A stretch of DNA of 64,000 nucleotides from Vitrella brassicaformis CCMP3155 (taxonomy: Eukaryota > Protista > Chromerida), in NCBI GenBank assembly GCA_001179505.1, contig CDMY01000445.1:1-64000 (forward strand), written 5' to 3'. Made by a program: the position numbers and the translations under genes. Below are positions 1 through 21,700 of this stretch, one piece after another (the first letter of the stretch is position 1; each line of letters begins with the position of its first letter). A model generated the notes under the pieces. It searched no databases, was not told the DNA's origin, and saw nothing but the letters and a program-made list of their open reading frames with translations.

Positions 1-189
1 ATCACCGAAGTGAGATCTGTGTTGACCACCCTTCATGATGCCATACATGGACAGAAACAACTTTGGCTGACTGGCCAGGCCATCGGTCTTATTAAAGTAA
101 AAGCACTCTTACTCTGGGACTTACCGCCCAGCAGATCCTCTATTCAGCTAACTACAGGAAAGGTCCTCACCGGCCTTTTTTCGCACACT

Positions 190-2190
190 ATGGTAGCTCG
201 GGGACATCAGAAACGACGAGGTTGCGCCACTACCAAAGGAGGATGCATCGGGGTTCAGCTGCTCATGGGTGTGTTGTGCGCAAGGAAAGCAACCACTCTC
301 GAATCAGCGTCGCTTTCACATCGCCTCCCTCTCTTCATACGACCGAAGACCTCGCCCATCTGGCGTCCGTCATCTCGCTTCAGCAGAATGGCGCTCACAC
401 GACGAACAAAGCCTACGCGGCCTCGCTTATTCGACCTCGCAAGCCACGACGATGACGCATCCACATCGACATCCAAAGATCCTCAATTGCCGCTGCAGGC
501 GGAAGGTGCGCTCGAGTCTTTGCGTGCCCAGCCTTCCCAGAAAGACCGTTTTCTTCATCTGGTGAGGCTCGGTGACGAGCTCACGCGTCGCAACCAGCAG
601 CCTGGAGGACTTCCTGACGGCTTTGAGCAGCGAGCGGAGAAGGTGCCCGGCTGCGTGGCTACTGTCAAGGTGCTGGCGACACTCGATGACGATGCCGTGA
701 AGGTCTATGGCACTGCGGATGCTCGCGTGTCGCAGGGCTTGGTGGCTCTGGTGGCGGAAGCTCTGGAGGGGCTGCCTGCGCCACGAGTGCTGGCTGTCCC
801 GCCTGACGCCTTCGCTGGCTCAACTGCTATGGCGTCCTTTCTGACCCCTGGCCGGCTCAATGGGCTCCGCAGCCTCATCATGACCATCCAGCGACAAATC
901 GCGTCACGCGTGGCAGGTGTTGGAGAAGAACAAGAGAGCGAGACCAGCGCATCTGCAGGCAGCGAAGGTCTCCCCCTCGGCCCCCCTTCGTTTGTGCTCT
1001 CTGAGGCCGCCGGCGAGGTTGCTGTGCTGCTATCCGGCGGCGTTGATTCGTCCGTGGCTGCTCGGCTGCTGGTGGATCGCGGCGAGCGAGTGCGTGCCTT
1101 TTACCTGCGCATATGGCTTGAGGACGAGCTGTCCCATCTGGGCGAGTGTCCGTGGGAAGAGGACCTAAGGTTCGCCCGCGACACGTGCGACCAGCTGAAG
1201 ATCCCCCTCGAGCTGGTGTCGCTGCAAGACTCCTACTGGGACAGTGTGGTGCGCTACACCATCAGTGAGGCGGCAGCGGGCCGCACGCCCAATCCCGATG
1301 TCATGTGCAACACCCGGGTCAAATTCGGGGCCTTCTGCGACGACCACGGCCGGCACTTCAAGAGAGTTGCAACGGGCCACTATGCGCAAGTGAGAAGAGA
1401 CCAGGAGAACGGGCCTGTGCGGCTATTCCGCTCACCTGACCGCATCAAAGACCAAACCTATTTCCTCTGTGGGCTGTCCCAAGAGCAGCTGGCGATGGCC
1501 GACTTCCCAATCGGCACTTTCGACAAGGCCCGAGTGCGTCAGCTTGCCCGAGACTACTCCCTGCCCACAGCCAGCCGCCGCGACTCGCAAGGCATCTGTT
1601 TTCTGGGCAAGCTCCGTTGGGAGGATTTCCTGACCCACTACCTGGGCAAGAATCCCGGTCCGATTGTTGATGTGGCGGGTGGGGAGTTGCTGGGTGAGCA
1701 TCATGGGCTGTGGCTGCACACCGTGGGGCAGCGGAAGGGACTGGGGCCCTACCTGAGAGACAAGATGGTGCACCGGGGGCCCTTCTTCGTGGTCGGCAAA
1801 GACCCAGACACCAACACGCTGCTCGTTACCAATGACTATGACGCCATCGACAGGCCGCGGCAAGAGCTGCAGGTGGAGAGCATTGGGTGGATCGCCGGTA
1901 AACCGCCCGCATCACTGTCGACCGCCGGCGATGCGATTATGGAGGTGCAGCTGCGTCATGGGCCCAAGACACACATGGCTCGGGTGCGGCTGCTGGACGG
2001 GGATGGCGAGTCAGCTGAGGTGCATCTTGAGGAGAAGGACTCGGGCATAGCCCCCGGTCAGTTCGTGGCGTTTTACGCTGGCGACGAGTGTCTCGGCGGG
2101 GGACGCATTAGGGAGACGTGGAAATGGAAATGGGATGGGGTGGGGGGCAGGCAAGAAGCGCCTTCGAGCAATGTGATGCTTCTGCAGTGA
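190..2190 (+). CDS. mnmA: SufE-domain / tRNA 2-thiouridylase MnmA fusion, intronless, with putative organelle-targeting leader
   Basis: Single ORF. SufE-like region (~538-900): KDRFLHLVRLG, KVPGCVATV, ADARVSQGL, LTPGRLNGL. MnmA (~1015-2112): SGGVDSSVAA, PNPDVMCN, ATGHYA, KDQTYFL, DSQGICFLG, TVGQRKGL, PGQFVAFY. Start ATG 190 is a guess; ATG 388 is an alternative. Confidence 0.93.
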   Translation: MVARGHQKRRGCATTKGGCIGVQLLMGVLCARKATTLESASLSHRLPLFIRPKTSPIWRPSSRFSRMALTRRTKPTRPRLFDLASHDDDASTSTSKDPQLPLQAEGALESLRAQPSQKDRFLHLVRLGDELTRRNQQPGGLPDGFEQRAEKVPGCVATVKVLATLDDDAVKVYGTADARVSQGLVALVAEALEGLPAPRVLAVPPDAFAGSTAMASFLTPGRLNGLRSLIMTIQRQIASRVAGVGEEQESETSASAGSEGLPLGPPSFVLSEAAGEVAVLLSGGVDSSVAARLLVDRGERVRAFYLRIWLEDELSHLGECPWEEDLRFARDTCDQLKIPLELVSLQDSYWDSVVRYTISEAAAGRTPNPDVMCNTRVKFGAFCDDHGRHFKRVATGHYAQVRRDQENGPVRLFRSPDRIKDQTYFLCGLSQEQLAMADFPIGTFDKARVRQLARDYSLPTASRRDSQGICFLGKLRWEDFLTHYLGKNPGPIVDVAGGELLGEHHGLWLHTVGQRKGLGPYLRDKMVHRGPFFVVGKDPDTNTLLVTNDYDAIDRPRQELQVESIGWIAGKPPASLSTAGDAIMEVQLRHGPKTHMARVRLLDGDGESAEVHLEEKDSGIAPGQFVAFYAGDECLGGGRIRETWKWKWDGVGGRQEAPSSNVMLLQ

Positions 2191-2485
2191 TGGTGTGTCT
2201 TGTGGTAGTGAGTGTGTACATATGTATTGTGATGAGACTTGGCTCGAATTCTGAAATGGTTGGTTGATCGACCGACCGATCGACATGACATGCGTCTATC
2301 CAGTCGTCAGGCAGCGACAAGGGGCGAGTGAGTGCGGGATGGATATACATGACGGACGGTATACACAGACAGCCACACAGCGAAAAGTCACACGGCGCGC
2401 ATTCATCACCCAAATATACATTCATGTTGATCTGATCATGTTGCCTTGGTGCTCTCGTCGATTGCTACATGCATGTCCCTATCGA

Positions 2486-5400
2486 TCACGTGAGGAAGAT
2501 GGCCTTGCCGGCCCTTCGGAAACCTTCAAGGCGACTGTACAATGCCTGCATTACACAAACGGACACACAGAGAGGCACGCACCCATGATGGGATCATACA
2601 CATTGCATTTCCTGCCGACCTTCCTGTCTGCCGCTTGTTTGAATGCGTTGCCCCACTCGAACCCCAGCTGGGCCTCACGGGACAGCTGGAACACACCCAT
2701 GGCCTGACAGACGCGCGCAGATGGGTGGACCACATCGAGTCTGTGCACATGGGATGGATACGTGTGTCGGTTTGACCGACCTGGAGTGTGATGAGTGCGT
2801 TGTGCAGGTATGGTACACAGCATGCGTCGCCGCACACCAGCTTGTGGCCCTCATACAGACGCTCCCCACTCTTGCGCGACTGACATGCACTCACACACAC
2901 ACGAGCGCGCGCACACACACACAAACACACACAGACACGAAGACACCACCCCATGCGCACAGGTCAGGCGTCGTGTTGTTATTCACCAGCACAGCGAGTT
3001 GTTTGAGGTTAGTGAATCGGAATGAGGCCCTCTTCTGTTCGGTCGCCGTGTGGTGCAGGTTGAGGAGTGTGTACACCGCCAGCCACACCGCCTCCAGGAA
3101 GGGAAACAGCAACGACACACCCACACTCATTATCGGAACACCTGCATCCACACACACACACACACACACACACAGCTGCGTCCATTCATTCCATGGTTGC
3201 GTAGCGCGTTCCCACCTGAAGGGTCGACAGCAAATGTGTCGTCTGTCGGCTGCCGGAGCACGCCGAAGTCCACCATATCGACAAGGGTCTCGTGCAAGTG
3301 CCGCACGCCGCCCCAACCATCCCCTCCGGCCGCTATACACATCTGCCGTGGGTGGTAGAACTGCCGTGCGATGAGAGGCAGCAGCTCCCGCACCCCCCTC
3401 TCGATCGCCGACAGCTCGATGACGCCCCTGCCGCCGTTGTTGCTGGCCAGGAGGGACATGGCTGGGGCGCGCGAGCGCAGACACGACACAACCACCAACA
3501 CGACGATTGCCTGACAAACAGCACAGACATGCACACATTGGTGTGTGTGTGTGTGTGTCGGGTAAGTCTGCCAGGTGCCTACTTGGTTGGCGAAGTGGTG
3601 GAATATCTGATTGCGATACGGCCCCAGCATGAAGAGAGGCGTCGGCACAGCACCACGACGACCGTCTGGGGATCCACTGCCGTTCCCGGGCCTGCAGCGA
3701 ACCTTCCACCCATCCCCCTCACGGACGAGCCACTGCCTCAGCAGCTGGCACACATTGTCGACGGTCTGCTCCCACTGCTGGTGTAGCTCGCCCCGCTCGT
3801 GCTCCCTGATGCCGTCGGCCAGCGTCAGGAAGGACGAATGCAGCCTCGCACCGCGAATCTTGAGCTCAGAGCCCAACCAACTCGACTGATCAGATCATGG
3901 CAGCCCAAACCAAACACCTTTGCGCATCTTTCGGCCCTGTTGGCTGCGTGCCTACCTTGGCGGCCAGCTGAGCGAGCGGGAGGCACGTGGGCTCATGGTC
4001 GGGGGGTGTGGGGGGCAGCGGCGTGTAGGTGGCGGATGTGGCACCGCTACTGGCGAGGCGTGCGGTGAGTGTTCGATGCAGGATGACCGGCACCACCACA
4101 GCAGAGGGCAGCAGCACCTGCCGGTCCTCCAGACAACGAATTGTGTCCTCAGCCACCCCATCCAACACCTACAGGCACGACCAGCCAAGGCGCAATCGGG
4201 TGGGATCGGAATCTCTCCCCTTCCTTGTGCCCCTACTTGTCTCTGTGTAGCTGGCGGCAGTGTTGGCAGTGGTGTGGATGCCTTGGACACTGTGATGCCC
4301 TGCAGACCAGTGATGGTGTCGTCACCGCTGCTGCTGGCGGAGGTGCGTGTGTCGACGAGGGGCATGGTGTCGGTGAGTGCGGGTGCATCCATTGCAGACA
4401 CACCGCCGGACACGTGGAGGGCGTGGTGGTCGCGGATGTAGGCTGAGGCCATCTCCTTGAGGGACAGCATCGGCCCCACATCCACCACCACCCTATGAAT
4501 GTACACAGCACACAGAGGGAGGGGCAATGCCGACATGCACTCGAACATTTGTGGTGTGTGTTTCGATTTACCGGCCGAAGTCTTCTGTGAGGACGTTGGC
4601 GGCTTTCAGGGTCCTTGCCAGGGTCTCGCCGAGCTGATAATCACACACATCAATGCACATACATCGGCTCCCCTCTACTCTGTGTGTGCAGCATAGCTGC
4701 CTACCTTGCTCTCCCCCAGGAACTCTCCCAGGAAGCTGGCGTCCTCCACAATGCGATCGTAGGCAATCGTCACAGGCACCTGCACCACACAGGGGACACA
4801 CCCCGCCCTTGGTGTGGCGGTATGACGACTGGCTGACTGGCTGACTGACTAACCACTTTGATGTCGGGCACCCGGGCCTGGAAGAGCAGCTCCATGGCTA
4901 TCGACAACAAACCCTTCTTGGGCTCCAGCATGAGCCGTGACCTGGACCGGCCGCCCTCAACGAAGAACTCTACCACCCCGTAGTGCCTGTACGAACAAAT
5001 GAATGAACCAAGGAAACACAGACAGTGCACTCAGTTCCGCGCCCCTCCCTCCGCCCCTCCATCCGTCCACTCGTCCACTCGTCCACCGTCCGTCCGTCCT
5101 TACGTGAGTACGTTCTGCATGTAGGTCTTGAAGCACGTAGTGTAGAGCGGCCCCGCACCCCTGAACCGACGCTTCATGAAGAACGCACCTAGCACAACAC
5201 ACATAGCGCATTGCATTCACCACAGACAGACAGACAGGTATGTATGGCCTGACTGACACACCACCCGTGGCTGCCTCTCTACCTACCTGATCCCCTGAGT
5301 ATGTAGCTGACGAGTGGTATTTTGCCGAGGTCCTCTCCGGCCGCGATGAAGGGGATCTTCACGTCCATCACATAACACGCAAACGACACCTGTATGACCG

Positions 5401-6356
5401 CATACACCAACACAGCAACGACAGACACCGGAGTGCATGCGCACGTGTGCGGCTGCTCAGTGTGTGTGTTTGCATACGATGAGGAAGTCGACGTAGGATC
5501 TGTGTGTCGGCAGCAGCAGCAAAGGCCCATCCCGATCCAATCGCCAATGTCTTGGGAATGAACGACACACACAAAGACACTGGTGCCTGCCTTTCGTCGA
5601 TCGTGTGGCTCCCCTCCCTCCCTGCCCACCTGATGGCCTCCCACTGCAACGGGTCCACCTCAATCGACTCGAAGATCTGTGAAAACACCTGATCAGATCA
5701 TGGACACACACACGGGCGCATGGACAAGTAGCACCCACCAGCACAGCTATGTTTTGTGCTGTGCTGCACGTACTGGTTTGAGCATGGCGCCGAAGAAGCG
5801 GATCATGCTGAGGGAGAACGAGGCCGAGATGCGGTGGTTCATGCGGACCACCTCCATTTCAACCGACAAGACGGCCTGCTCAAACTCACTACCCCCCTCC
5901 TTCCCCGACCTCCTGGCCGCCTCGCGAAGGATCTCATCACGAACCTGCATCCAATCGATTGCAGACAGACACCAACCAGCCCGCACACAACACAAAAAGC
6001 TTTCATTGCAAGCAGCTGTAGTCGCTGCGCCGTTGCGATGATTGATGCATCTGCATGCGTTTTGTGTGCACCGACCGACCTGCTCTGCCGACATGGTTGC
6101 CTCGTGCAGATCTTGGTCCGAGGGCGCCTCTGCCAGATGTGCAGGTTTGGCTGCCAGCGCCCATGTGAGTGTGCTGGCGACGGGCACATAGCCATTGGCG
6201 GCTCGGCGACCTGACACACACATCAGATCAGAAGCACACAGAAATGTGAGAATCTGATGCAGCAGCAGACAGTATGCTGGGGGCATTGATCTTCGCATCT
6301 GACTGACCGGCAACGACAATTGTGGTGTCCTGCTTCTCCATAGCGTCATGGTTCAT
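2486..6356 (-). CDS. Glycerol-3-phosphate/dihydroxyacetone-phosphate acyltransferase (GPAT/GNPAT family), multi-exon
   Basis: Acyltransferase motifs on separate exons: PTHRSYVDFLI, FIAAGEDL, FFVEGGRSRS, PIAYDRIVE. Last exon QALYSRLEGFRRAGKAIFLT* has no PTS1. Start 6356 (MNHDAMEKQD) or 6341. Confidence 0.85.
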
Positions 6357-6385
6357 CCATTCCTCACCCTTCCCTTCTTCATGTT

Positions 6386-6395
6386 TGAGCTCGCA
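6386..6395 (-). promoter_or_regulatory. Recurrent upstream motif TGCGAGCTCA (GPAT/Elongin B-like divergent gap)
   Basis: The same 10-mer occurs at 16715, 29800, 41081 and 50348; variants occur at 7663, 24981 and 50367. Confidence 0.55.
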
Positions 6396-6558
6396 CCGTT
6401 TCGTCGTTCTTTTCTCCAGAAGAAGAAGCTGCCGACGAGCATCGGCGTGAAGATCAGTTTCCTTTGTTTCCATCGCGATTACCGCGTCCGAAGCCTCATC
6501 TCCCTCCCGCAGCATCAGCTCGGACGTGTGATCCTGTAGCTGTGTCAGTGGCTGCGTC

Positions 6559-7125
6559 ATGTCTGGTGAGGTGCTGACGAGCCATGACAGCATCCACGTG
6601 CGCATCAAGCGGCGTCGGCAGACGGTCTTCCTCCTCTGCTACCCCACACAGCCGGTCGGCGTGCTGTACCAAAAGGTCGCCACCGTCATGAACAAGGACA
6701 GATCCGACATACGGCTGCTCAAGGCCAACCTGGTAGGGAGCGAAAAACCCACGAAATGCGACGAAATGAATGCATGCTTTGGTTTGCGCGCGCATGTGTG
6801 CATGCGGGTGGAACAGATACTGCAGGAGGAGGCATCTCTTCGGGCCCAGAACATCGGCAATGGCGAGATCATCGGACTGGTCTTCAAAGTGGAAGGTACG
6901 GAGCGCAGACCCTGAGAGCAGAGCCGCATATCTCCCACCTCTGATGGCTGCCTGTGTTGTGCTGTGTGCTTTTTGTCAGGCAAGGAGGAGTTCGAGACGC
7001 CCGAGTACGAGAGCCTTCCCGGCGACGCCGCCCCGACCAACACAGGCGCAGCGGGAACCGACGGTGCCACCGGTGCAGCTCCCCCGGTGGAGCCCGAGGG
7101 CGCTTCTTCCACCGCAGCGTCGTGA
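6559..7125 (+). CDS. Ubiquitin-like protein, Elongin B-like, 3 exons
   Basis: MSGEVLTSHDSIHVRIKRRRQTVFLLC...IRLLKANL|ILQEEASLRAQNI...IIGLVFKVE|GKEEFETPEYESLP. This resembles Elongin B (IRRHKTTIF, VGLAFR) with an unstructured tail. GT-AG introns join in frame. Confidence 0.7.
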
Positions 7126-7830
7126 TCCCATCCCTGCCGAGAAGATGGAATGGAATATGCCCAGCGAGATGTTTTACGTTCCATTGTACAGACCGATCGG
7201 ATGCTGCGAGCAGCTGAGCGCTTTTGAGAGATCGACTGACTTACTGACTGACTTACTGACTGACTGTCGGGAGGGTGAGCTTTGTGTCACCTCCCTCTGC
7301 TGCCGTTTCTGGGTTGTGCATACATACATTCATAGCAGACAGACAGACTGACAGGGATGCTTGAGTGGCGCGTGTCTATTTGATCGTGCTATCTATTTAG
7401 AGCAACGCCTGCGCGGCGGGGGGTGCGATGAGGCGCGCTGATGGCTGCGAGTTGCTTCTCCGCAGGGGGAAGTTTCTCGCCTGCATCGTCGAGTCTTGCA
7501 GTACTTACCGCTGTCGCACGGCGGACGCCATGAGTGGCACAGACAGCACAGATTGAGATGTATCTATCGGCTCAACATCCTTCTTGTATTCACTCATTCG
7601 CCCGTGGCATGCATGTGCATCCATTTCTCCACGACGTTCACTCCCCCGCGTTTCCCTCAGGCTGCGAGCTCGGCACGCAGATCTCCCCCTTTTTTGTCCA
7701 GCAGAGGCTGTCCGAATCGAAGCAGCTGGCTCACTTCACTCCATCTTTGGCAGCTCACAGCGAAGTCTTCCATCCGTCCGCCCGCCCGCGTGAGGCTGCA
7801 GGCTGGATCTCTGAGTGGCGGTTTGCAACC

Positions 7831-10800
7831 ATGGCGGGCAGTGCTTCATCGGCATCTGCTCGCTTTCGCTTTGCAATTGACCGAGGCGGCACCTTCACCG
7901 ACGTCTACGCCGAGATCCCCACTGCCGACGGGCAGACACACTTCGTCAAGACCATGAAGCTGCTGTCCGTCGACCCATCATATGTAAGCATTAAAGCACG
8001 AAAGCAACAGCAGGAAGCCAGACACACACTCACTCTCTACCGATTGCATGAGTCAGTCAGTGTGATCGGTCATACTGTCCCTTGATTCATTGCCTCAGGA
8101 TGACGCACCACTGGAGGCGATTCGGCGCGTTCTGAGGGAGTACGAGCCGCGCAGTGTGTCTGACTCGGGCGAGGTGGACCCGTTGGCCATCGAGTGGATT
8201 CGCATGGGCACGACCGTCGCCACGAATGCACTGCTGGAGAGGAACGGGGAGCGGGTGGCATTCATCACCACAAAGTGAGTGAGCCAAATGTCCCAGGAGG
8301 AACATGGTCACCCACTTGCAATGTGTGAGCGCACCTCTCCTGTCCGTCTGTCTGTCTGTCTGTTTGTTTGTATGTCAGGGGATTTCGTGACTTGCTGCAC
8401 ATCGGCAACCAGAGTCGGCCGGCCATCTTCGACCTGAAGAGCCGCAAGCCGGAGAATCTGTACGAGTGTGTGGTGGAGGTGGACGAGCGGGTGCAGCTCA
8501 TGACCAGGGAGGACGCCGGACAAGCTATCGAGGTACGGACGGGCCGACACACTCAGAGAGAGAGAGAGAGAGCGAGAGAGAGCTGGAGTCGCACAGCCGA
8601 TTGTGTATGTGTGGGCGTGGGTGTGTATGTGTCTGTCGGTTCAGCAGGGCAATGATGACGAGTTGGTCCAGGGCATCACGGGCGAGTACGTCAAAGTCAT
8701 CAAGGTGCGGGAAGGCTGCAAGCCAAGCGAGCCGATTGATCCATGACATGAACCCTTGCACTGCACGGATGTGCTGTGCTGTGCTGTGCTGTCAGGATTT
8801 GGATTTGGACGAGGTGAAGACCAAGCTGACGGAGGTCTACAGCAGAGGCATTCGGTCGCTTGCCGTGGCTTTCCTGCACTCGTACACATACCGAAACCAC
8901 GAACAACAAGCCGCCACCATCGCTAAGTGCGTCGTCAGTCAACACACAACACAACACAAGGACGGCGCACACACCGATCAGCTACCAATCAGCCGACACC
9001 AGCTCTGTGCGTGTCTGCCGCTTCCTCCAGGCAGCTAGGCTTCACCCACGTGACATTGTCCCACGAGCAGTCGTCGGCCAACAAGATTCTGCCCCGCGCC
9101 TACACGGCATGTGCGGACGCATACCTCACACCCACCGTCAAGCAGTACATCGCATCCTTCTCTCAAGGCTTTAGCGTGAGCCGAGCCACCGAGCCAACGA
9201 GCGATGATGTGCACGTGTGGATGAAAGCGATTGTGTGGGCCGATGGATCCATCAGAGTGCCCCCCCGCTGAATTTCATGAAGTCTGATGGCGGCCTGGCA
9301 CCCACAGGGGAGTTCTCAGGCGTACGGGCGGTGCTGTCGGGGCCTGCAGGTCAGCCCAGCAAGGCCTTGGCCACGTGCCGCCACTCTGTGAGTGATAGGT
9401 GTGTGTTGGATTTGGTGCCAGGTGGTGTGGTCGGTTACAGCCGCACGGCGTATCAGCAGAGTGGTGGCACGGCGGTCATCGGCTTTGACATGGGCGGCAC
9501 GTCCACCGACGTGTCGAGGTACAACGGGGATCTGGAACTCATATACGACGGAGAAGCTGCCGGCATCACTCTGCAGGCAACACAAGACAACACAGCACCA
9601 CACATGGCTTGACACAGCACATGACACGTCGATTCGCATCATAGACAGACAGGTGCCGTGCATTGTGGTTGTGTGTGCAGGTGCCCCAGCTGGACATCAA
9701 CACAGTGGCTGCAGGTGGTGGGAGCCGGCTGTTCTTCCGAGGTGGCATGTTCCACGTGGGCCCCGAGTCGGCCAGGGCCTACCCCGGGCCGGTGTGCTAC
9801 CGCAACGGCGGGCCACTCGCCATCACCGACGCACAGGCCGTGTTGGGACGACTTCCACCACACCGATTCCCTCGGTGAGATAGACAGACACCCACACAGT
9901 GCTGGAGGGATGGATGGATGTGTGTGCGTCTTGTGCGTGCAGGATATTTGGTCCGAGCAAGACGGAGGGTCTGGACGTGTCGTTGGCGGCCAAGCAGCTG
10001 TCTGAGCTGACGGAGCAGATCAATGAGTTCAACCAAAGGGAGGGACGAGCCGCCATGACCATGCAGGAGGTAAGCAAGTGACGGAGGCTGCAGATGTGTT
10101 TCATGTCGCATGTGAGGGAGAATGTCGGTTTGTGTGACCTTCTCCCACCATGCAGGTGGCTCTGGGCTTCCTGAAAGTCGCCAACGAAGGTGAAAAGCCA
10201 AGAAGGCGGTGTCCCGGCGTCCGTGTTCTTGTTTGTTTTCCACATCTTGGTTTGTCTGTCGCTTGCTTCTGTCTGTCTGTGTGTCAGCGATGACGCGGCC
10301 CATCCTGTCACTCACGAGGGTATGCATTACACACACGTGGCGATGGCCCAAACACGTCAATAATGCCATTACACACAACCGTGATGTCTCTATCGTGTGT
10401 GTGTGCTGACAGGGCCGCGGCTACAACCCCAGTGAGCATGCGCTGTCGTGTTTTGGCGGGGCGGGGGGGAACCACGCCTGCTCGATGGCCAGGTGGGGGC
10501 CGGGGGAGGCAGATGGGTCCGCCTCTCGTGTTTGGATGGCATCCATCCATCCATCCATCCATCATATATATCGGTGTGTGTGTTGGGTGTCATGTGTGTC
10601 AGGTCGTTGGGTATGCGTCGTGTGTACGTCCACCGCCTCGCTGGTATCCTATCGGCCTACGGGCTGGCACTCGCAGACGTCAAAATCGGTAGGTACACAC
10701 ACACATACACATACACATACACGCAGACGCGCACATGCAGTCAGTCCATCACTCTCGTGTAATTCGATTCGTGTGTGTAGACGAGGCCCAGCCCGTGTTG

Positions 10801-13800
10801 GAGCACTTGCCGCCAGTCGTCATGACCGCTGCAGAGGTAGGTGGGTGGGGCCTGCCGCACAGGCAAACACAAACACAGCTTCCTTGTGTGTCTCACTTGT
10901 CAGGCTCACACCGCTGAAGACTCAGCAGCCGCACAGGCGCTCGACAGTGAGTGAATCAAAAACGGAACAGTCCTGGCAAAGACACTGGCCTGTGTTGTGT
11001 TTCTGTGTGTAGATTTGCGTGTGCAGCTGGCCGAGTTGGAGAAGAGGGCGAAGGAGCGGCTGCAGGCGCAGGGCTTCGCACTCAACGACATACACACCAA
11101 ACGATCACTCACTATACGGTAGGCTCCACATGCACACACACGCGCATCGTCCACCCACCCGGACCTGCCATGGTTGTGTTGCAGCTATGACGGGACGGAC
11201 ACCTACGTCAAGGTGTCCGAGGCGGCCGGCAAGACTTACAAGGACATCAGTGACGACTTCAGAAAGGTGCGGCAAATGGCCGTGCAAGCATAGATACACA
11301 CAGATGTATCTCTCTATGTGTCTGTCTGTGTGCACTTAGTTGTACATCCGTGAATATGGGTTCGAGCTCTCCACTCGGCTGGTGGTGGAGGAGGTGAGAG
11401 TCGATGCCGTCGGCAAGTCGTCAGCAGGCAGGGCACAACTCAAGTGCCAGGGGACTGAGGAAGCGGTCAGTCAGTCACAACACTCACCCACGATGCCTGC
11501 CAGACATTTTGCACAGGCAGGCAAGGAGAATGTGTGGCCTCTCACTCCTCCACTCACTCAGATGTCGAGTCCGGTCGAGAGCTATCCCATATGGTTCGAT
11601 GCCAGTGTGGTGCCGACCAGGGATGGCCTCAAGGTGGAGGAGGAGCAGAAAGGCGCCCTTCTCCTCAGGACACCCATCTACCTTACAGAAAGGTAAGGTA
11701 CTCACACACAGACACCGGCGACGGACAGCGTAAACCCATACATCACTCACATCTATCTGATCTGCATCCATTCATTCATCCGTCAATAATCAATCGATCA
11801 GGTGCATGGCCGGCCAGTCGATCAACGGCCCCGCGCTGCTGTGCGATGCCAACACGACCGTCCTGGTGGAGCCCAACTGCACGGCGACGTTCCTCGAGGA
11901 CGGCTCCGTCGAGATCCTCCTGCACGACGGCGACCAGCCCACACAGACAGATGACGCAGCAACCAACGGGGTGGGCGGAAGCGATGAGGAGGTCATCGGG
12001 CCTGCGGACCCCATCACACTCAGTGTATTCGGACACAGGTACGCCATGGGCAGAGAGGGAGACCAGCCACACCTCACTGCTCTCTGATCGCGTTTGTTTG
12101 TCAGGTTCATGGGCATCGCGGAGCAGATGGGTCACATCCTCTCCCGCACGGCCATATCGGTCAACATCAAGGAGCGCCTCGACTTCTCATGCGCCATCTT
12201 CGGACCAGACGGCTCCCTCGTGGCCAACGCCCCCCACCTCCCTGTGCACCTAGGGGCCATGCAGGAGGCCGTGCGCTATCAGATAGAGCTGCTCGGCAAC
12301 AGCTGGCGGGAGGGCGAGGTCATCCTTTGCAACCACCCGGCGTATGGCGGGTCACACCTGCCCGACCTGACCGTCATCACGCCCGTGTTCCATGAGGGGA
12401 CGAGGGCGGTGTTCTATGTGGCATCGAGGGGCCACCATGCGGACGTGGGCGGCATCACACCCGGCTCCATGCCGCCATTCTCGAAAAGTGAACGAGGGGA
12501 GGGAGGGAGGGAGGGAGGGAGGGAGGACACACAGAGAAATGCTCACCTTGCAGGTGAGAGTCTGTGTGTTGTGGTGTGTTAAGGTATCGGTGAGGAGGGG
12601 GCGGCCATCCGGTCGTTCAAGCTGACGGAGGGGGGAATCTTCCAGCACGATGCTACCGTGGCCCTCTTCGGACACACCATCGACGCCTGGACGGATGAGC
12701 AGAGGAAGGCCTCCACCGCGCAGGCGTGTCAGCACGGTAACATCCCCGCCCAGCCCCCCACCCGTCGGCTGCAGGACAACCTGAGCGACCTGCACGCCCA
12801 GGTAGCGGCCAACCACCGGGGTGTGACCCTAATGGAGGAGCTCATCAAGGAGCACGGCCTGCGGAAGGTCCAGTGCTACATGAAGTACATCCAGGACGCC
12901 AGTGAGGAATCGGTCAAGGAGATGCTCGTGGCCATGTCTCACAAGAACGGCCTGCAGCTCATCGACACCCTCCGGGGCGTCGACTACATGGACGACGGCT
13001 CCGCCATACAGCTAGCCATCACCATCGACCGCACCAAACGCACCGCAACTTTCGACTTTACCGTAAGCGGCAGACAGACACCTCTTCCAAACGAAACCAG
13101 CAAAGAGTCTGTCTGTCTGTCTGTGTGTGTGTGTTCAGGGCACTGGTCCAGAGGTGTACGGCAACCTCAACTGCCCCCGGCCCGTCACGGCGTCTGCCAT
13201 CATCTACTGCCTGCGGTCGATGCTGGACTCAGACATCCCTTTGAACCAAGGCTGCCTCAAACCGGTGCAGATCATCCTGCCGCCCCACTCCCTCGTCAAC
13301 CCTTCTCATGACGCGGCCGTGGTGGCCGGCAATGTGCTGACGTCGCAGCGGATCACCGACATTGTTTTGAGGACTTTCCGGGTGGTGGCCAACTCGTATG
13401 GGTGCATGAACAACTTCACCTTTGGCAACAAGCTGCTGGCATTCTACGAGACCATCGGTGCGGTGCGCGTCTGTGTCTCTGCGAACAAACACAAACCATG
13501 CATGAGAAGGATGTCTGTGGCTGGGTGTGTGTGGATTAGGTGGTGGCAGTGGAGCGGGCCCGGCATGGCACGGCCGCAGCGGCGTCCAGTGCCACATGAC
13601 CAACACACGAATCACTGACGTGGAGGTCGTCGAAAGAAGGTGCCTCTCACCACACCCACATGTGATTGATGTGATGTCATTTCCCTCCTCTCTCTCTGTC
13701 TGTATGCTGTATGCTGTATGCAGGTACCCGGTGCTGCTGCGTCAGTTCAGGCTGCGTGAGGGATCCCAGGGCGTTGGCAAGTATTGCGGCGGTCAGGGCA

Positions 13801-14153
13801 TCATCCGGGAGTTCCAGTTCCTCCTCGACGGCATGGAGGTCAACTGCCTCATGGAAAGGAGAGCACGGCCGCCCCAGGGGCTAGACGGCGGCGGCGATGC
13901 GCTCCCCGGTCTGAATCTGTGGGTGCAGCGGTCCAAGCACGACCGCACCCTGAACCTGGGCGGCAAGAACTCCATCGTTGTGCAGGCGGGCGACCGCGTC
14001 ATCATCGCCACACCAGGCGGGGGCGGGTACGGCGCCCCAGATGACACTCGTGACGTCTCTGGCAAGAAGGATGGGTCACCGGTGGCTGCCCACCCACCCA
14101 CGCTTGGGACGGGGTCGGTCAATGCGTTCTGGAGGGCAGCTCATGAGAGCTAG
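7831..14153 (+). CDS. OPLAH: 5-oxoprolinase (ATP-hydrolysing; hydantoinase A+B fused), >20 exons
   Basis: [134 protein letters not shown]. Confidence 0.96.
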
Positions 14154-14658
14154 ACCAGGGATGGATGGGGAGTGGATGTGTGATGCTCGTGGTTGTGCTG
14201 AGCATGCAACTTTCTCCTGCGGAGAGGGTTTGTTTGTTTGTTTGTTTGTGCACAGGAGGGAAGCCGATAAGGCTTGTCCGTCTTGCCGTACGTGTCGTGT
14301 CGTGTCGTGTCGATCTAAGTCTGTGAACGTGTCTGTAGCCATAAGCCCAAGATTGATTGACGTGGATTCATGTGATGTATACGAGGGAGGACCCTTTTTC
14401 CTCATTGATTCATGTGGTCACCGATTCAGTGCATGTCGACAAACAAATGCAGTCCACTCTCCATCTGGCCACACACGCACACACGCACACATGCGTACAG
14501 GCGCAAATAGCATAAAGCATGCAACACACATACAGATATAAAGCTGTCTCTCTCCGAAGCCATCAATCAAAACTGGTCGGTCCGAAAATTGCTGTGACCG
14601 CGTAAACGCATGCAGCGTCACACACACGTGGAGGGAGAACGAGACAAAGCCTTCTGCA

Positions 14659-16676
14659 TCACTTAGCCGACAGCTTCTGCTGTATGGCCAGTAGGCTCTT
14701 CTGTCGGTTGTCCTTCTCTCGCTGGAGAGCCTTCTCTTTGGCCTCCTTGAGATTGGCACCGAACGGGGGCTTCAGGGTGCCCTCCTGCACACACACAGGC
14801 AGAGGCACACACGAAGGGACATACATGCGTAGTCGAAGCGGACTCTCTCTGTTGCTGTTGACCTCAGTGATGATGCCCGTGAGGAAACGGGCGGGCGTGA
14901 CATCTGAACAGCATGCAACGTGGGATCATTGTGTGTGTCCTTCCCTGTCTTGCATCCCCGCCTGAGAGCCTCACCGAAAGCAGGGTTGAACACCTGTGTC
15001 CCATCAGGGGCGATCGACGCACCGCCACTCACCTGCACGAAGCAACAACCCGACAGAAGCGGCCAAGGCCATGCATGTCACCGGTGTACCATGTTGTTCT
15101 GTCTGTCTATCAGGTTGGGACACATACACGGAGTCACATACACGGAGTATTTCGTCGGAGCTCCTCTCCTCGATGACGATGTCTTGGCCTGTCGGTATGG
15201 TGAGGTCGATGGTGGAGGTCGGCACACACGCGTACACCGGGATGCCGTGTGCATGCGCCGCCATCGCCAGATTGAACGTCCCTGCGTACAGTACACCCAC
15301 ACGTCCACACACACCACCCCCATGTTCTTGCTTTGCTCCCTCAATGTAATGTGCTGCCAGGCTGCCATATATGTGTAGGTAGTTACCGATTTTGTTAGCG
15401 ACGTCTCCATTGGCGGCCACCCTGTCGGCACCGAAGACGACGGCATCGACCTTGCCCTGGTACATGAGGAGGCCGCTCGCACCATCCACGATCAGGTGGT
15501 GGGGGATCCTGCTCTCACGCAACTCCCAGCATGTCAACTTGGCCCCCTGCACACATTTACAAATAAGAGAGATATATATGCACTCCCTCAAAAGAGGCAG
15601 GCGTGTGATGTGACTGATGCGAGTGGAGTCCACCTGCAGCCGCGGCCTGGTCTCGTCCACATACACATGGAGGTTCTTGCCGGCCTGGCTGAGGCTGAAG
15701 ATCACACCGAGGGCGGTGCCGTGGCCTGCCGTCGCCAGAGCGCCCGTGTTGCAGTGGTGGATCAGATTCAGCCGCTCAGCAGGCCCGTTGGTGGCGGTCG
15801 CGCCCTCTGTCTTGGCCGCCTTGGACGCCCGCATGGGTGCGACATCCTGGTCGATGGTGGCGACGCCGTGAGAGCCGAGCCTCTTGTTGTTCTCGACGTC
15901 CTCGTTGAAGATGCGCTGCGCCTCATCCACAATGCACTCGCTGATCAGTGCCGCACTTGCATCCTCACGACTGAGCAGCGGAAGGGCATACACACATATA
16001 CTAGGTGGCATGCGTCGGCGTGCCTGTCTGTCTGTATCCTTACATGTTGAGGATGGTGTCGACGACCTCGACGATACGGGCGGTGGCGTACATCAGATTG
16101 ACCGCCGTGGGGCGAGCCTCGTCCATCGCTGACACATACACACACACCAAGCGAAGCCATCCGTCCCTTGCCGTGCCGTGTCTGCATGCTACCTCTCACC
16201 CTTCTTGGTGTCTTGCAGTTTGTCTTTGAGTGTACTGCCGCTGACTGATGGCTCCTCCTTGGCAATCAAAAGACACTCGAGAGCCATTCCTGACGGCAAC
16301 AGCCACGGCAGGTCGGTGACAATGCACTGCCATCAGTGTCTGTGTGCCTACCGTATGCGGCAGCGCAACCGATGGCAGGCGCGCCGCGGACCTTCATCGA
16401 ACGAATCGACTCGGCCACCTGCAGCACACCACGCAGAGGTGGATGCACACACATGGATGAACAATCAATCTCACCTCCTTTGCATTGTGGAGATCCACGT
16501 AGGAGACCGATGCCGGCAGATCACTCTGGTCCAGCAGCTGCAGACGCGCACTGTCGCCCTGCCCCACACACGCAACACACGGTGTGAGATCTGCGTCAGT
16601 TGATCTGCCATCGTCTATGACTCACCTTTTGGATCCATTTCATCGTGAACACCTCATCCTCTCCTTTGCCGTTCAT
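14659..16676 (-). CDS. mtnA: Methylthioribose-1-phosphate isomerase, multi-exon
   Basis: [67 protein letters not shown]. First exon [17 protein letters not shown]; last exon ends QQKLSAK*. Confidence 0.94.
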
Positions 16677-16714
16677 CGTTGGGGATGGAGAAGGGAGGAT
16701 GCCGCGGGTTTGCT

Positions 16715-16724
16715 TGAGCTCGCA
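16715..16724 (-). promoter_or_regulatory. Recurrent upstream motif TGCGAGCTCA (mtnA/truA gap)
   Basis: Lies in the 85-bp gap between divergent ATGs; CAGATCT follows at 16735. Confidence 0.6.
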
Positions 16725-16761
16725 GCTAAGCTTGCAGATCTCCTGACGGATGCATTGAACA

Positions 16762-17371
16762 ATGAATGAGCCTGATCTACTCGGATCATCAGATCCATCC
16801 ACACCGGAAGAATGTGGCGATCTGGCCCATGCGCAGCTTCGGTATTGTCGATTGTGCGTGACGGCCACCTTTCTCCTCACCGTCTGCTGCATTCCGCACC
16901 GCCTGGAGGCCTTTCGAGCAGCGCCCCACCCCAATGATCCTTCTTCCTCTCTGCAGCCCTTCAGAAGACACGCTGCTCCATTTCAAAGGCATCGCCATCA
17001 TTGTGACCTGTCAGCGGCGCCTGTCGACGTCGATGTGGTTGAGGAGAAAGCACCACCACCTGGGGAGGTGCCGTCTTACTACTATGTGTCTACTGATGCG
17101 GCTGATCTGACTGATGTGGAGTGGTGCGAGAGGCGGCGGCGGTCTGCAATGGACGAGGGGCGGGTGGAGTTCAGCTCGCCGGCCGAGCACATTGCCTTCG
17201 GCCGGATGGTGGGGTACCTGGTGTGGGTGACCTATGACGGCCGGCAGTTTGAGAGCTTCGACGACTCGCCGACCGACAGCGCCATCAAGGCCTACCTCGT
17301 CAACATACTTGACGATGAACTGAGGCTCAGACCGAAATCCGGTGGGCGGCCGATCATAAGCAGCACACACA

Positions 17372-17412
<41 letters not shown>

Positions 17413-18728
17413 GCCATCATTCTTCTCTTGTTGTCTGTGACAACTCATTGATTTGCAGCTTTGCAGCACTGTGTGCGGACAGATGCCGGCATGAGCGCGT
17501 TGGAGAACGTCTTTCTGTTTGACTCCAACTGCCGGCCGGATATCGAGTCGATCGTCAGGCGGTTCAACCTCAAGGGCTCAGGCGTCAAAATCACCAAAAT
17601 GATCAAGGTGGGCGGGGAGGGAGGACACACTCGTGAGGACCATTGCGATGCCTTGGTGTGTATGGGTGTGCGTCTGACCTGCAGGTGTTGGATCATTTGT
17701 ATTTGCATGAGCTGCTGGACTCATGTGAGTTCTTCGTCCGCATTCCTTTCGAGGACCCGCAGCTCGTCACCAAGAACAAGTACATACACAATACACGCAC
17801 ACGCGTCCACACGGCCGACTCCACCTCTTTCCTCTCTCACTTTTCTGGCCAGAAACGAGATCAGCAACGCCTGCGCTAAGTTCACAGGCACCATTGATTT
17901 CGCCGACTACACGAGCGCCAAGGCCAGCAGCACCACACGCACGGTGGCAGTGCAGTACGACGAGGCGACGGGCGGCCTGCGGTTCATCTGTGAGGGTCAG
18001 GACTTCCTGCCCGACCAGGTGGCCATGATGGCTGCCGAGATCCTCAGCGGCAGCAAGGACACGCCATTGCCCCCACAACTCATCACACTGAGGTGAGGCC
18101 GGCTGCCTGGCTGGGGCAGGGACGGCACATGGATGCAGTGTGTGATCTATGGTGTGTCTGTGGTTGGTTCAGGTCAGTGTCGTTGAATTCCAATCGTCTG
18201 CAGAATGTGGCCTATCGGGACGTCAAGGAACCGTTGCCAGGTGAGGGAGGCAAAAGGAGCCCTCACCGAAGGACACAGAAGACGCCACGCCTCCCTTGTA
18301 TGTTCGTGATTGCAGCTGAACTGTCTGAGGCCAAGCAGGAGAGGTGCGGCGATGTCCTGGTCCTCTCACTCAACGACGCCCAGTACGACAGAATGAAAGG
18401 TATACACACAAACGACACCTGCCTGCCCCCAACACACACGCAGATGTGTGCCTCTACGTCTTCGCAAACAGAGAACGAGGGAGCCCTTGAGGTGCAGGTG
18501 CGCACCAGCATCGGCAAGGTGGCCTACCTGAGGGGGTGGAAGGAGACACGGCCCGACGGCAAGGCGCTGGCCAAGGTGTTGAGGCGAGAGGACCGCAAGC
18601 GGAAGGGTCTGCCTGACGAGGAGGCCGAGGCCGCCATGGAGGACCCCCAGTACAAGAGCAGTGCAGAAAAGAGGAAGGAAGCTGAGGCACTGCTCGACAG
18701 ACTCAGGCAGATCAGGGGCAGCTCGTGA
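16762..18728 (+). CDS. truA: tRNA pseudouridine synthase TruA-like protein with putative bipartite plastid leader
   Basis: YLVWVTYDG, RTDAGMSA (catalytic Asp region), FTGTIDFADY, FICEGQDFLPDQVAMM. Hydrophobic stretch LCVTATFLLTVCC followed by EA-FRAAP. Charged C-terminal extension. Confidence 0.78.
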
Positions 18729-21700
18729 CTGACATACAGAAATGTATGTACCATGGTGTGTGGTTGCCGCTGCGACTGCTTGAATGGTGTTGACGCAGCG
18801 GCTATTAAGCGTCATGTTGAATGGCGACGGAAAACACGCAGGTGTTCGTTGGAAGCATATGACGTGTTACTGCCCGCCACAACCGTCAGTCGACGCCTGT
18901 GGACGATTGGCAGCTCAAGATCCATTCAGGCAGCAGCTTGGGGGAAGCGGCCCTGTACACGTGAGTAAATTTGGGAGGCGACGAACACTAGAGAGGCGTT
19001 TCCCGCAGCATGCACGCGACGATGAGTTCATCCCACACCAGAGTCAGTACGCGGTCGGCAAAAATACAGACAGACAGACAGACAGCCACGTTAAGGTGTT
19101 CTCAGTTGTCGTGTCTAAGTGCACCTGGAGATCTTTGCAGGTCAAGCAATCAAGGCAGGCAGGCAGGCCAACGACAGCAACCAGACTAGGAAGGGCCTAT
19201 GGCTGCAAGAACGCATGCACCACGTCTGCGGGCACTGGCTGATCTCTGGCTATGCTATGCAGACGCGAGCGTGTCCATGGGTGTTCGTGGGTGCGAGCAG
19301 ATGTCGGTCGCTCGGTCAAAACCCGACTGGCTGCTCACACGTTCAGTCAGTCACTTGCATGCAGGATCGGCCTATGCGGATGCACTCGGCCTACCACCAG
19401 CATATCCATCGACTATCACACATCACCCTCCAACTCCCACCCTCTCTCTGTTCTGTGTCTCTCTTTCTCTCTTTGACACGCGTGCACGTGTATATAAACA
19501 AAAACGGACAGATAGGTACGTACGGACATACATGCAAGCAAACATGTATGCACCCACCCACCCACCCGGTACCAACTCACGCACACAGATACGCACCAAG
19601 ACATACATCCCGACGCGACACGACCGACACGACAGACAGTTCCGCGCACACGAGCGAACGAGCAGCGCCTTCATTCACACACGCGGTATACGTTGGCACG
19701 CATCAAGAAGAAAAAAGGAATTGGTGCGTGCGTCATCAGCTGTGTGTGAAAGATACGGCATCACTCGATCGTCGGAAAAGGCATGGCACACCACAAGCAG
19801 GCACGCAGGCAGGCAGGGAGACAGACAGACAGATAGGGAGCCAGCCAGCCATGCCGGGCGCAAAACTCCTTTCCTTCAATTATACGATTGTGTGCATAGT
19901 TACGGTGGGCTGGCTGGCACGCTACCAGCGACAAATACCCTTCCCCTCGCTCATTCATTCAGACAGACAGCCGACCGAGCAAGCAGAAGGGCGAATTGCG
20001 ATCGGTCGTTGTGCACGTATGTACGTAAGCATCTGTGAATGTGTTGTCAAGATATACATCCGTACGCATTGGTGGGCAAAGACACTGACGGACATAAGAT
20101 GGGATGTTGCGTTTGTACGTCGTGTGCGTATGTACGGCACATAAACAAGCCCTGGCCATGCATATGCATGCCTGTATGCATATTCACGCAGATGGATAGA
20201 TATACAGAGGGGAACTAGGTGCGGGTGCGACTGGACTCCCTCTCCCCTCCATCCCTCGCCCCTACCTGAAAAAGAGAGGCGTGAATGAGTGGTGGGTAGC
20301 TGGTGCGATCGACAGTCCCTACCTGATTGATGTATGACACGAATGCACCTTCATGCACTTACATCGACTCACTCACTCAGTCACTGGCACTCACTCCTGC
20401 CTACATACGCGTGTACGTATGTACGTATGTTTGTACGTATGTACGCATGTATCTGTACAAACACATATATATATATATAGCATAGCGTATACATAGCCAG
20501 TAGGACCAATTGGGGGCACGGGAGTTGTGAGAAGTGAGAGGTGTGTGTGTGGAGGGGGGACGGGACGGGACGACGAGCGAAAGTGAGACAAAAATGATTG
20601 AGCGGCTTGGACGGGGGAGCCAGGCTCGCCCGTAATTGGCATCCATCCATCCACACGCACATCATCCATCGACTAAAATCACAGCACACCACACGTCACA
20701 TCATATGATGGCACCAACTACGGACACGGCACGACACGACAGGGACACGCAGGTAGGCATGCAAAGAAAGAAAGAAATAGTAGGCATCTTCGTTGGTTCG
20801 TTCGTTCGTGTTGGTGCAATCACTCAATCACGTATTTCACACATTCGCACATTCATTCACTCATTCATTCACTAGGGGCACATTTTAGGCCAGCAGAGCT
20901 GCCAGGCTTGCACTCACGCAGCCATGCAGGCAGGCAGGCATCACACACGCACACAGAAGAATGAACACATTCACTACAGCCACACATACACGACACGAGA
21001 CATGAATTCACACGAATCAACAACATCCATTCGTCGATGGGGAGGTTAGTGGGAGCCCCTCTCTGTGTGCTTCTGCCTTGAAAATAGGCACGATTAGAGT
21101 AGGTAGGTACCCAACCGGCCGGCCACGCACTCACTCACACCCTCACAAACACACGCACGAATGCACGCACTCTATCAAACAACAAGGAGAGGGACAAAAC
21201 ACTTGATACAGATAGACAGACAGGCGGCAGGCAGTCAGACGCACAGCACGGCAAAGTCAAGCCGGGCCAGCCAACACTCATCTGTCTGTCTGTCGCCTCT
21301 GTCTTTCCTTCAGTGCACGCACTACTGCATGCACCAAAAAATACCTCAATTCGTCGCACACACGTACGTGAGTACGCGTGCACGGTTTCTTCTTCGCTGT
21401 GCCCTCATCCATCCATCCATCCATCCATCATCTTCAAAAAGGAGTCACCCCTTTCTCTGTCTACGCATCTCGGCAACCGTCAGTCACCATCCATCCCATC
21501 AGGCACCACCACATCAGCCAGCGGATGCACTGACGGGAACGCATGTGTGGAACATGCATTACAAGAAGCCGTTCACATCCGTCAATCGATCTATCGATCG
21601 TATGTATTGTATGTTTCTATGTGTATTAGATAGTTGTATCATTATATATATATACGCGCCCCAACCCTTCACCCGCACTCTCCCACCCAGCCCCACCGCC

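Follow-up and report, generated by a model that had tools for sequence, protein, structure and literature searches.

A SufE-type domain fused to MnmA in a compact protein of the alga Vitrella brassicaformis: a plausible sulfur relay for plastid tRNA 2-thiolation

Can a single protein both accept sulfur from a plastid cysteine desulfurase and place it on transfer RNA? The question is raised by a gene at positions 190 to 2190 of a 64,000-nucleotide (nt) stretch of DNA from Vitrella brassicaformis CCMP3155 (contig CDMY01000445.1 of assembly GCA_001179505.1, positions 1 to 64,000 of the forward strand, referred to below as the window), in which one coding sequence (CDS) joins a domain of the SufE family to MnmA. 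MnmA forms 2-thiouridine at position 34 (s2U34) of tRNA Lys, Glu and Gln, and MnmA-dependent s2U34 is essential for plastid translation. The persulfide of the cysteine desulfurase SufS normally needs SufE or SufU in order to leave the enzyme. A first-pass annotation of the DNA had proposed that the fused protein passes sulfur from SufS through its SufE domain to MnmA. From the analysis described here, the locus is likely to be a nuclear gene without introns, from an alveolate alga with a plastid, that encodes a plastid tRNA 2-thiouridine(34) synthase with an N-terminal SufE-type sulfur-acceptor domain. The relay from SufS to the SufE domain and on to MnmA is plausible and fits the sequence data, and its probability is put at about 0.62. 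The parts of the gene are as follows, with amino acids (aa) numbered from the ATG at position 190 and conservation counted over the 120 best homologues.

190..2190, + strand: complete, single-exon CDS of the SufE–MnmA protein (666 aa followed by TGA at 2188–2190), defined by ATG 190, the TGA and the RNA contigs
190..435, + strand: putative bipartite plastid-targeting leader, with a basic N-terminus, a hydrophobic segment at aa 17–30 and, after it, a region rich in Ser, Thr and Arg that is nearly devoid of acidic residues
517..897, + strand: SufE-type sulfur-acceptor domain, aa 110–236, from Pfam PF02657, PDB sequence matches, AlphaFold2 (AF2) and Foldseek
652..654, + strand: codon of Cys155, the predicted persulfide-carrying Cys (VPGC), from the HMMER alignment to CsdE and from conservation
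898..1014, + strand: flexible acidic and Ser-rich linker, aa 237–275, from sequence, AF2 and family spacing
1015..2109, + strand: complete MnmA with HUP, PRC-barrel and C-terminal β-barrel domains, aa 276–640, from Pfam, TIGR00420, 2DER and Foldseek
1033..1050, + strand: PP-loop ATP-binding motif SGGVDS, aa 282–287, aligned with SGGVDS of E. coli (120/120)
1291..1308, + strand: NPDVMC, the D-x-x-C motif, aa 368–373, aligned with NPDILC of 2DER (120/120)
1591..1602, + strand: GICF with the second catalytic Cys, aa 468–471, aligned with 2DER (120/120)

The first-pass annotation had read a SufE-like domain with a persulfide-carrying Cys (PGC) into the N-terminal half of the protein, and had let its case depend on a SufE match in a Pfam scan. 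Such a match is found at aa 110–236, where PF02657 scores 70 bits against a gathering threshold of 27 (E 2e-19) and is covered from model position 3 to 121 of 121. The best sequence match among PDB entries is CsdE (E 2e-06), and SufE structures are matched too. The motif VPGC lies at aa 152–155 (nt 643–654), and in the HMMER alignment against solved structures C155 falls on Cys61 of E. coli CsdE, within the sequence IAGC; the counterpart in SufE is Cys51. The predicted fold is that of SufE, modelled by AF2 with a predicted local distance difference test (pLDDT) of 90–98 and superimposed by Foldseek on the SufE and CsdE structures 1MZG, 3G0M, 1WLO and 5EEP with template modelling scores (TMt) of 0.76–0.86.

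The Cys of this domain is strongly conserved. In the alignment of the 120 best homologues, every fusion homologue with a residue at this column has the Cys (106/106), and it is kept in Chromera, Babesia, Theileria, Eimeria and Neospora. Across 80 full-length fusions the only invariant positions of the SufE domain are this Cys, the Asp of a GxADA motif, one Gly and the Arg of a PGR motif. The Asp and Arg may correspond to the SufS-facing D74 and R119 of E. coli SufE. The domain falls below the NCBIfam equivalog cut-offs, with 40.7 against 160 for NF006792 (SufE) and 33.5 against 136 for TIGR03391 (CsdE), and by these profiles it is to be regarded as a SufE-family domain that is the equivalog of neither bacterial SufE nor CsdE. 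When the SufE domain alone was used as a phmmer query it matched only its own protein, a result that is uninformative on distribution since the domain is too divergent at that database size. A profile made from the SufE domains of the fusions found, as free-standing relatives, bacterial SufE of the Oceanicaulis type and diatom SufE–BolA; the word pre-filter used in this search makes it unfit for inferring the origin of the domain.

The C-terminal part is a full MnmA with the DxxC motif and a second Cys, as the first-pass annotation had described it. All three MnmA domains are recognized by Pfam at aa 276–640 (PF03054, E 3e-66; PF20259, E 9e-20; PF20258, E 2e-18), and the scores exceed the NCBIfam equivalog cut-offs for MnmA, with 351.3 bits against 236.95 for TIGR00420 and 343 against 284 for NF001138. 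E. coli MnmA (2DER) is matched with an E-value of 4e-75, and Foldseek gives TMt 0.88–0.89 for 2HMA and 2DEU. In the alignment to 2DER, D370 and C373 correspond to D99 and C102 of the E. coli enzyme, and GICFLG lies on GICFIG with C470 at the position of C199. All 120 homologues share the residues of the PP-loop as well as D370, C373 and C470. The enzyme is classed as a D-type MnmA because Asp, not Cys, occupies the position of E. coli D99 in the DxxC motif. Judged by these scores, the identity of MnmA and its fusion to SufE can be taken as far beyond chance.

The two domains are joined by a linker (aa 237–275) that begins IASRVAGVGEEQESETSASAGSEG and is acidic and Ser-rich, in agreement with the earlier description. 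In the fusion family the end of SufE and the PP-loop are separated by 24–156 aa, with a median of 44. The AF2 model, which was built from the family alignment, has a mean pLDDT of 86 and a predicted template modelling score (pTM) of 0.72 and consists of two confident domains; the segment that joins them, residues 186–203 in the numbering of the public gene model P0001 (see below), has a pLDDT below 50. In the model the linker is a disordered segment of 20–40 residues, which would be long enough for reaching the MnmA active site.

The SufE–MnmA architecture is not new. Yang et al. (2022) listed a SufE domain, found with a hidden Markov model (HMM), in the MnmA of Toxoplasma, which is described as an apicoplast enzyme, and in the same work the domain content of Toxoplasma TGGT1_294380 is listed as a PP-loop and an aminotransferase class V domain (PMC9420914). 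A SufE-like N-terminal domain was described in Plasmodium MnmA by Swift et al. (2023), who also proposed the relay from SufS to the SufE domain to MnmA (PMC10219651). The Plasmodium protein localizes to the apicoplast, and deletion of sufS or mnmA destroys this organelle whereas deletion of the free sufE does not (PMC10219651). The terms Chromera, Vitrella and algae do not occur in PMC10219651, and no description of the fusion outside Apicomplexa was found in the literature searched.

The Vitrella protein is orthologous to, and collinear with, the apicoplast MnmA known from Toxoplasma, Plasmodium, Babesia and Theileria. It shares with Toxoplasma gondii TGGT1_309110 and Plasmodium falciparum PF3D7_1019800 the order of leader, SufE or SufE-like domain, linker and MnmA, the conserved catalytic Cys, Asp and PP-loop, the setting in a lineage with a red-derived plastid, and the same relay hypothesis. 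The orthologues of Chromera, Babesia, Theileria, Eimeria and Neospora either align collinearly with it or carry the SufE Cys. It differs from the parasite proteins in its compactness, 666 aa against 1083 and ~1600 aa, being free of their long low-complexity insertions. Pfam recognizes its SufE domain plainly, at 70 bits, whereas structure-based analysis was required for that of Plasmodium, and its host, unlike Toxoplasma and Plasmodium, is free-living and photosynthetic. A small, soluble-looking orthologue that is intron-less and has a canonical SufE domain would be convenient for testing the published relay, by which SufS would feed MnmA without Tus proteins, and for the dispute over persulfide or [4Fe–4S] chemistry that is taken up below.

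In the proposed relay the protein would be imported into the plastid by means of its bipartite leader, and the SufE domain would dock there on the plastid group II cysteine desulfurase SufS. C155, on its SufE loop, would take the sulfur of the SufS persulfide, and the flexible linker of about 40 residues would let it deliver this sulfur to C470/C373 of the MnmA domain in its own or a partner chain. The PP-loop of MnmA would adenylate U34 of plastid tRNA Lys, Glu and Gln, and the C2 oxygen would be exchanged for sulfur. The fused SufE domain would in this way stand in for the TusA–E relay of E. coli, and it would be tRNA thiolation's own tap on SufS, apart from the free SufE or SufE–BolA that feeds iron–sulfur (Fe–S) assembly. 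The relay fits because the SufE Cys and the putative SufS-facing Asp and Arg are invariant, the linker is flexible, the leader is plastid-like and the published Plasmodium genetics agree.

Several points weigh against the relay. Every sulfur-transfer step, for this protein and for any member of its family, is a prediction, and the plastid targeting of the Vitrella protein is likewise read from the composition of its leader. The SufE domain is a divergent paralogue, since it lies under the NCBIfam SufE and CsdE equivalog cut-offs, and a pTM of 0.72 is no proof of a fixed interface between SufE and MnmA. The plastid MnmA of the green lineage works without a SufE fusion. In one attempt out of four, B. 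subtilis MnmA, which has no SufE domain, made up for the missing Plasmodium enzyme (PMC10219651), so that SufS may hand over sulfur directly and the SufE domain may not be strictly required. Finally, it is disputed whether D-type MnmA works by persulfide or by labile [4Fe–4S] chemistry (PMC13066941).

This last dispute gives rise to the alternative that survives best, although it is an unlikely one. The SufE domain would supply sulfur to build or repair a labile [4Fe–4S] cluster on MnmA, with D370, C373 and C470 as ligands, and U34 would be thiolated by cluster sulfide instead of a Cys persulfide. According to a 2026 review, E. coli D-type MnmA can bind an Fe–S cluster through two Cys and one Asp and cluster-dependent thiolation has been reported, but the clusters are called highly labile and their function unresolved (PMC13066941). 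The three candidate ligands are invariant in the Vitrella family (120/120), yet sequence cannot separate the cluster from the persulfide because both models use the same residues. A cluster would in addition need an iron donor, and none is evident here. A parallel for such a role is found in plant SufE3 (SufE–NadA), whose SufE part supports the NadA cluster, a precedent that reportedly goes back to Murthy et al. in 2007 (in the reference list of PMC10219651).

It is distinctly improbable that the SufE domain merely docks on SufS or activates it while sulfur passes from the SufS persulfide directly to the Cys of MnmA, as in the YrvO–MnmA pair of Bacillus. Swift et al. regard direct SufS-to-MnmA transfer as the closest analogy, and the Bacillus enzyme alone could complement, as mentioned above (PMC10219651). 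A loop Cys would be needless for docking, however, and yet it is the residue found without exception in the 106 fusion homologues and kept even in the fast-evolving parasite orthologues.

The leader that follows ATG 190 has a hydropathy peak of 2.2 at aa 19–29, and the 48 residues of aa 33–80 include 12 R/K, 1 D/E and 13 S/T. From its composition it is a probable bipartite leader of the pattern used for a complex plastid. Brown-algal homologues have signal peptides ending in ...AECF or ...GYSF, the type used for red complex plastids, and red-algal homologues have N-termini that resemble transit peptides. The link to the plastid drawn in the first-pass annotation is favoured by both the leader composition and the plastid-type leaders of the homologues. 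As the leader is judged by composition alone, a mitochondrial thiouridylase of the MTU1 type could be considered in place of a plastid enzyme, but this is highly unlikely. The closest relatives are the MnmA proteins of red algae, red-derived lineages and apicoplasts; next come N-terminally extended MnmA-type proteins of green plants, which are presumed to be plastid enzymes, and then bacteria. The Atlas search puts an apicomplexan MnmA cluster closest, and mitochondrial MTU1 clusters rank under the apicomplexan, diatom and green clusters. Of the parasite orthologues, Plasmodium MnmA is localized to the apicoplast (PMC10219651) and that of Toxoplasma is described as an apicoplast enzyme (PMC9420914).

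The integrity of the gene was examined by aligning contigs of four sequencing runs, two of RNA and two of DNA, to nt 1–3000, with 2878–3000 skipped as repeat. RNA run X1 gives contigs at 151–852 and 826–2544 with no gap or joint in that range, the second of which runs from the last part of SufE across the linker and the whole of MnmA. This second contig is RNA-derived, because two splice joints downstream are absent from both DNA runs. Joint RNA coverage extends over 151–2544 and is unspliced, and the DNA contigs are continuous over 158–2877. The weak points are the overlap of the X1 contigs, which is only 27 nt (826–852) and lies within the SufE domain, and a hole at about 700–1100 in the coverage of RNA run X2. 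The stretch 850–1050, across which the first-pass annotation had asked for RNA reads, is bridged by the contig 826–2544, and one mRNA covers both domains in place of the separate transcripts on which that annotation would have foundered.

A database search found over 100 further proteins, drawn from independent genomes and transcriptomes and including complete open reading frames (ORFs) of MMETSP transcriptomes, that have these four Pfam domains in the order seen here. Single BLASTP high-scoring segment pairs run through both domains in Chromera (aa 45–507, 46% identity), Babesia (86–577) and Theileria (74–574). That the fusion is an artefact, in which read-through, mis-assembly or an erroneous gene model has joined two adjacent genes and to which the 27-nt overlap and the X2 hole might point, is therefore very unlikely and can be set aside, the ungapped RNA contig and the continuous DNA contigs speaking against it as well.

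The listed open frame that contains the gene is uninterrupted from 10 to 2190 (+), and from ATG 190 it encodes 666 aa. P0001, the public gene model, is a protein of 600 aa that starts at ATG 388, is without aa 1–66 and probably has no plastid leader. An extension of the ORF upstream to nt 10 was rejected: nt 1–180 are a high-copy repeat, with a third-position GC of 0.48 where that of MnmA is 0.74. The frame upstream of 190 is regarded as fortuitous because this dispersed repeat happens to be open in frame, with that third-position GC. There is no ATG within the transcribed unique stretch 151–189, and ATG 190 is therefore the first start on offer, although the X1 RNA contig breaks on meeting the repeat. 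The base composition of the window is even, with GC at about 59% throughout. Together with the missing introns and the CA microsatellites this GC content might suggest a trypanosomatid, a reading rejected because all close homologues come from algae or apicomplexans. The data agree with a chromerid: an apicomplexan MnmA cluster is nearest in the Atlas search, the Chromera orthologue can be aligned over both domains, and the RNA runs are of 2015, from a study of several organisms.

To explore the distribution of the fusion, 1.84 billion cluster representatives were searched exhaustively by HMMER with the MnmA domain alone as query, and the 150 best matches were taken. About 60 of the 150 carry SufE, as judged with a local HMM made from the SufE domains of the fusion family, and nearly all of these are among the closest matches. 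The carriers that could be named are the red algae Porphyridium, Rhodosorus, Purpureofilum and Cyanidium, together with diatoms, brown algae, a haptophyte, Chromera and four apicomplexans (Babesia, Theileria, Eimeria and Neospora). The sampled MnmA proteins of the green lineage (Selaginella, Vaccinium, Riccia, Adiantum and Cymbomonas) have N-terminal extensions of 80–160 aa, in which no SufE is seen even at a Pfam E-value below 0.1. SufE is also absent from all bacterial-length representatives among the 150 closest MnmA clusters. This wide spread across the sampled red algae and red-derived plastids, with an invariant Cys and no counterpart in the sampled green proteins, is the only part of the picture that was not found in the literature searched, and it is visible in domain databases.

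A quick maximum-likelihood tree was made from 121 MnmA domains. The land-plant and prasinophyte proteins form a fully supported clade of their own. Nine changes of the label ‘SufE present’ are needed on the tree. Seven rows among the red-lineage proteins are without SufE, and six of them are interpreted as truncated models because they have only 13–104 residues ahead of MnmA; the Guillardia model begins in what appears to be the last SufE helix. The seventh is the gregarine Digyalum. The rows of Babesia and Theileria, which do carry SufE, lie on a long branch beside the bacteria and account for another label change. A single red-lineage origin is no more than compatible with the tree because the base of the red-lineage groups is unresolved and the root unknown.

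A tentative scenario, which we regard as rather less than an even bet, is that the fusion arose once in a red-algal ancestor and reached diatoms, brown algae, haptophytes, chromerids and apicomplexans by secondary endosymbiosis, the green lineage having lacked it from the outset. The fused domain would be a private sulfur channel independent of the SufE of Fe–S assembly or, alternatively, would load a [4Fe–4S] cluster in situ as SufE3–NadA does. Diatoms also possess separate SufE–BolA proteins, so that in these algae the SufE fused to MnmA is an additional, dedicated copy. Were the scenario true, the compact and well-folded algal protein would be a far better subject than the large, insertion-rich parasite proteins for the biochemistry of transfer from a group II desulfurase to a D-type MnmA. 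Otherwise the gene is the expected orthologue of an architecture already described, and a compact and canonical addition to the family.

Comparison with characterized systems places the protein among several partial analogues. It shares its MnmA core with the E. coli enzyme, at 38–39% identity (Foldseek) and TMt 0.88, with an identical PP-loop, DxxC motif and second Cys. The proposed relay resembles the E. coli series IscS–TusA–TusBCD–TusE–MnmA in that a protein persulfide carrier would stand between the desulfurase and MnmA. It differs in that the carrier would be a single SufE-fold domain covalently joined to MnmA, with a presumed donor of the SufS type (group II) and not IscS. No Tus-type domain was detected in the Vitrella protein. 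B. subtilis YrvO–MnmA offers a likeness in its short, Tus-free path that leads from a SufS-like desulfurase to a D-type MnmA, but transfer is direct there and involves no SufE, whereas a SufE domain is interposed in the Vitrella protein.

Other analogues are found among the proteins that contain or resemble SufE. Plant SufE1 (SufE–BolA) and SufE3 (SufE–NadA) are similar in that they join SufE to a client or regulatory domain and belong to a plastid with the SUF system. They differ in that the partner in Vitrella is a tRNA-modifying PP-loop enzyme and that this fusion turned up solely in red algae and red-derived plastid lineages, not in the sampled land plants and green alga. The E. coli CsdA–CsdE pair is comparable since CsdE is a SufE-fold acceptor linked to tRNA modification through its service to TcdA. 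CsdE is free-standing, however, and its partner is an E1-like enzyme that makes cyclic N6-threonylcarbamoyladenosine (ct6A), not a thiolase.

A few proteins met in the searches are unusual in their domain content. The protein of the gregarine Digyalum oweni (P0251, 551 aa) has an N-terminal extension of 175 aa in which SufE is undetected by Pfam or by the family HMM, and lies on a long branch with Eimeria in the MnmA tree; secondary loss of SufE or its extreme divergence is possible. Two metagenomic proteins of 1142–1147 aa (P0037 and P0038) are SufE–MnmA fusions that also contain a SET domain (PF00856, precomputed Pfam). In P0038 SufE lies at 562–692 and MnmA at 744–1122, so the extra domain is N-terminal. 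A different and apparently bacterial fusion is seen in P0237 (525 aa), where an N-terminal GNAT acetyltransferase domain (PF00583, E 3e-17) precedes MnmA; its cluster has 133 members, of which the three named ones are Alloprevotella MnmA of 358 aa.

The repeat at nt 1–180 is dispersed and present in high copy, and its right end lies at about nt 178–187, a few bases before ATG 190. Its word depth in the DNA runs is 5,000–19,000, compared with about 21 for the neighbouring gene, and it is plentiful in the RNA runs too. Beyond its right end many different sequence continuations are found. There is no second copy of it elsewhere in the 64,000-nt window.

Downstream of the gene, two introns at 2546–2619 (74 nt) and 2704–2780 (77 nt) are present in both RNA runs and in neither DNA run. 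Their ends read CT..AC on the + strand, which corresponds to GT..AG of a minus-strand transcript. The spliced minus-strand sequence around 2546–2780 contains no long ORF, and the transcript is probably an untranslated region or a non-coding RNA that is convergent with the 3′ end of the MnmA mRNA and was co-assembled with it. Further to the right, at about 2850–3250, (CA)n/(TG)n microsatellites appear in the ORF translations as runs of THTHTH or CVCVCV.

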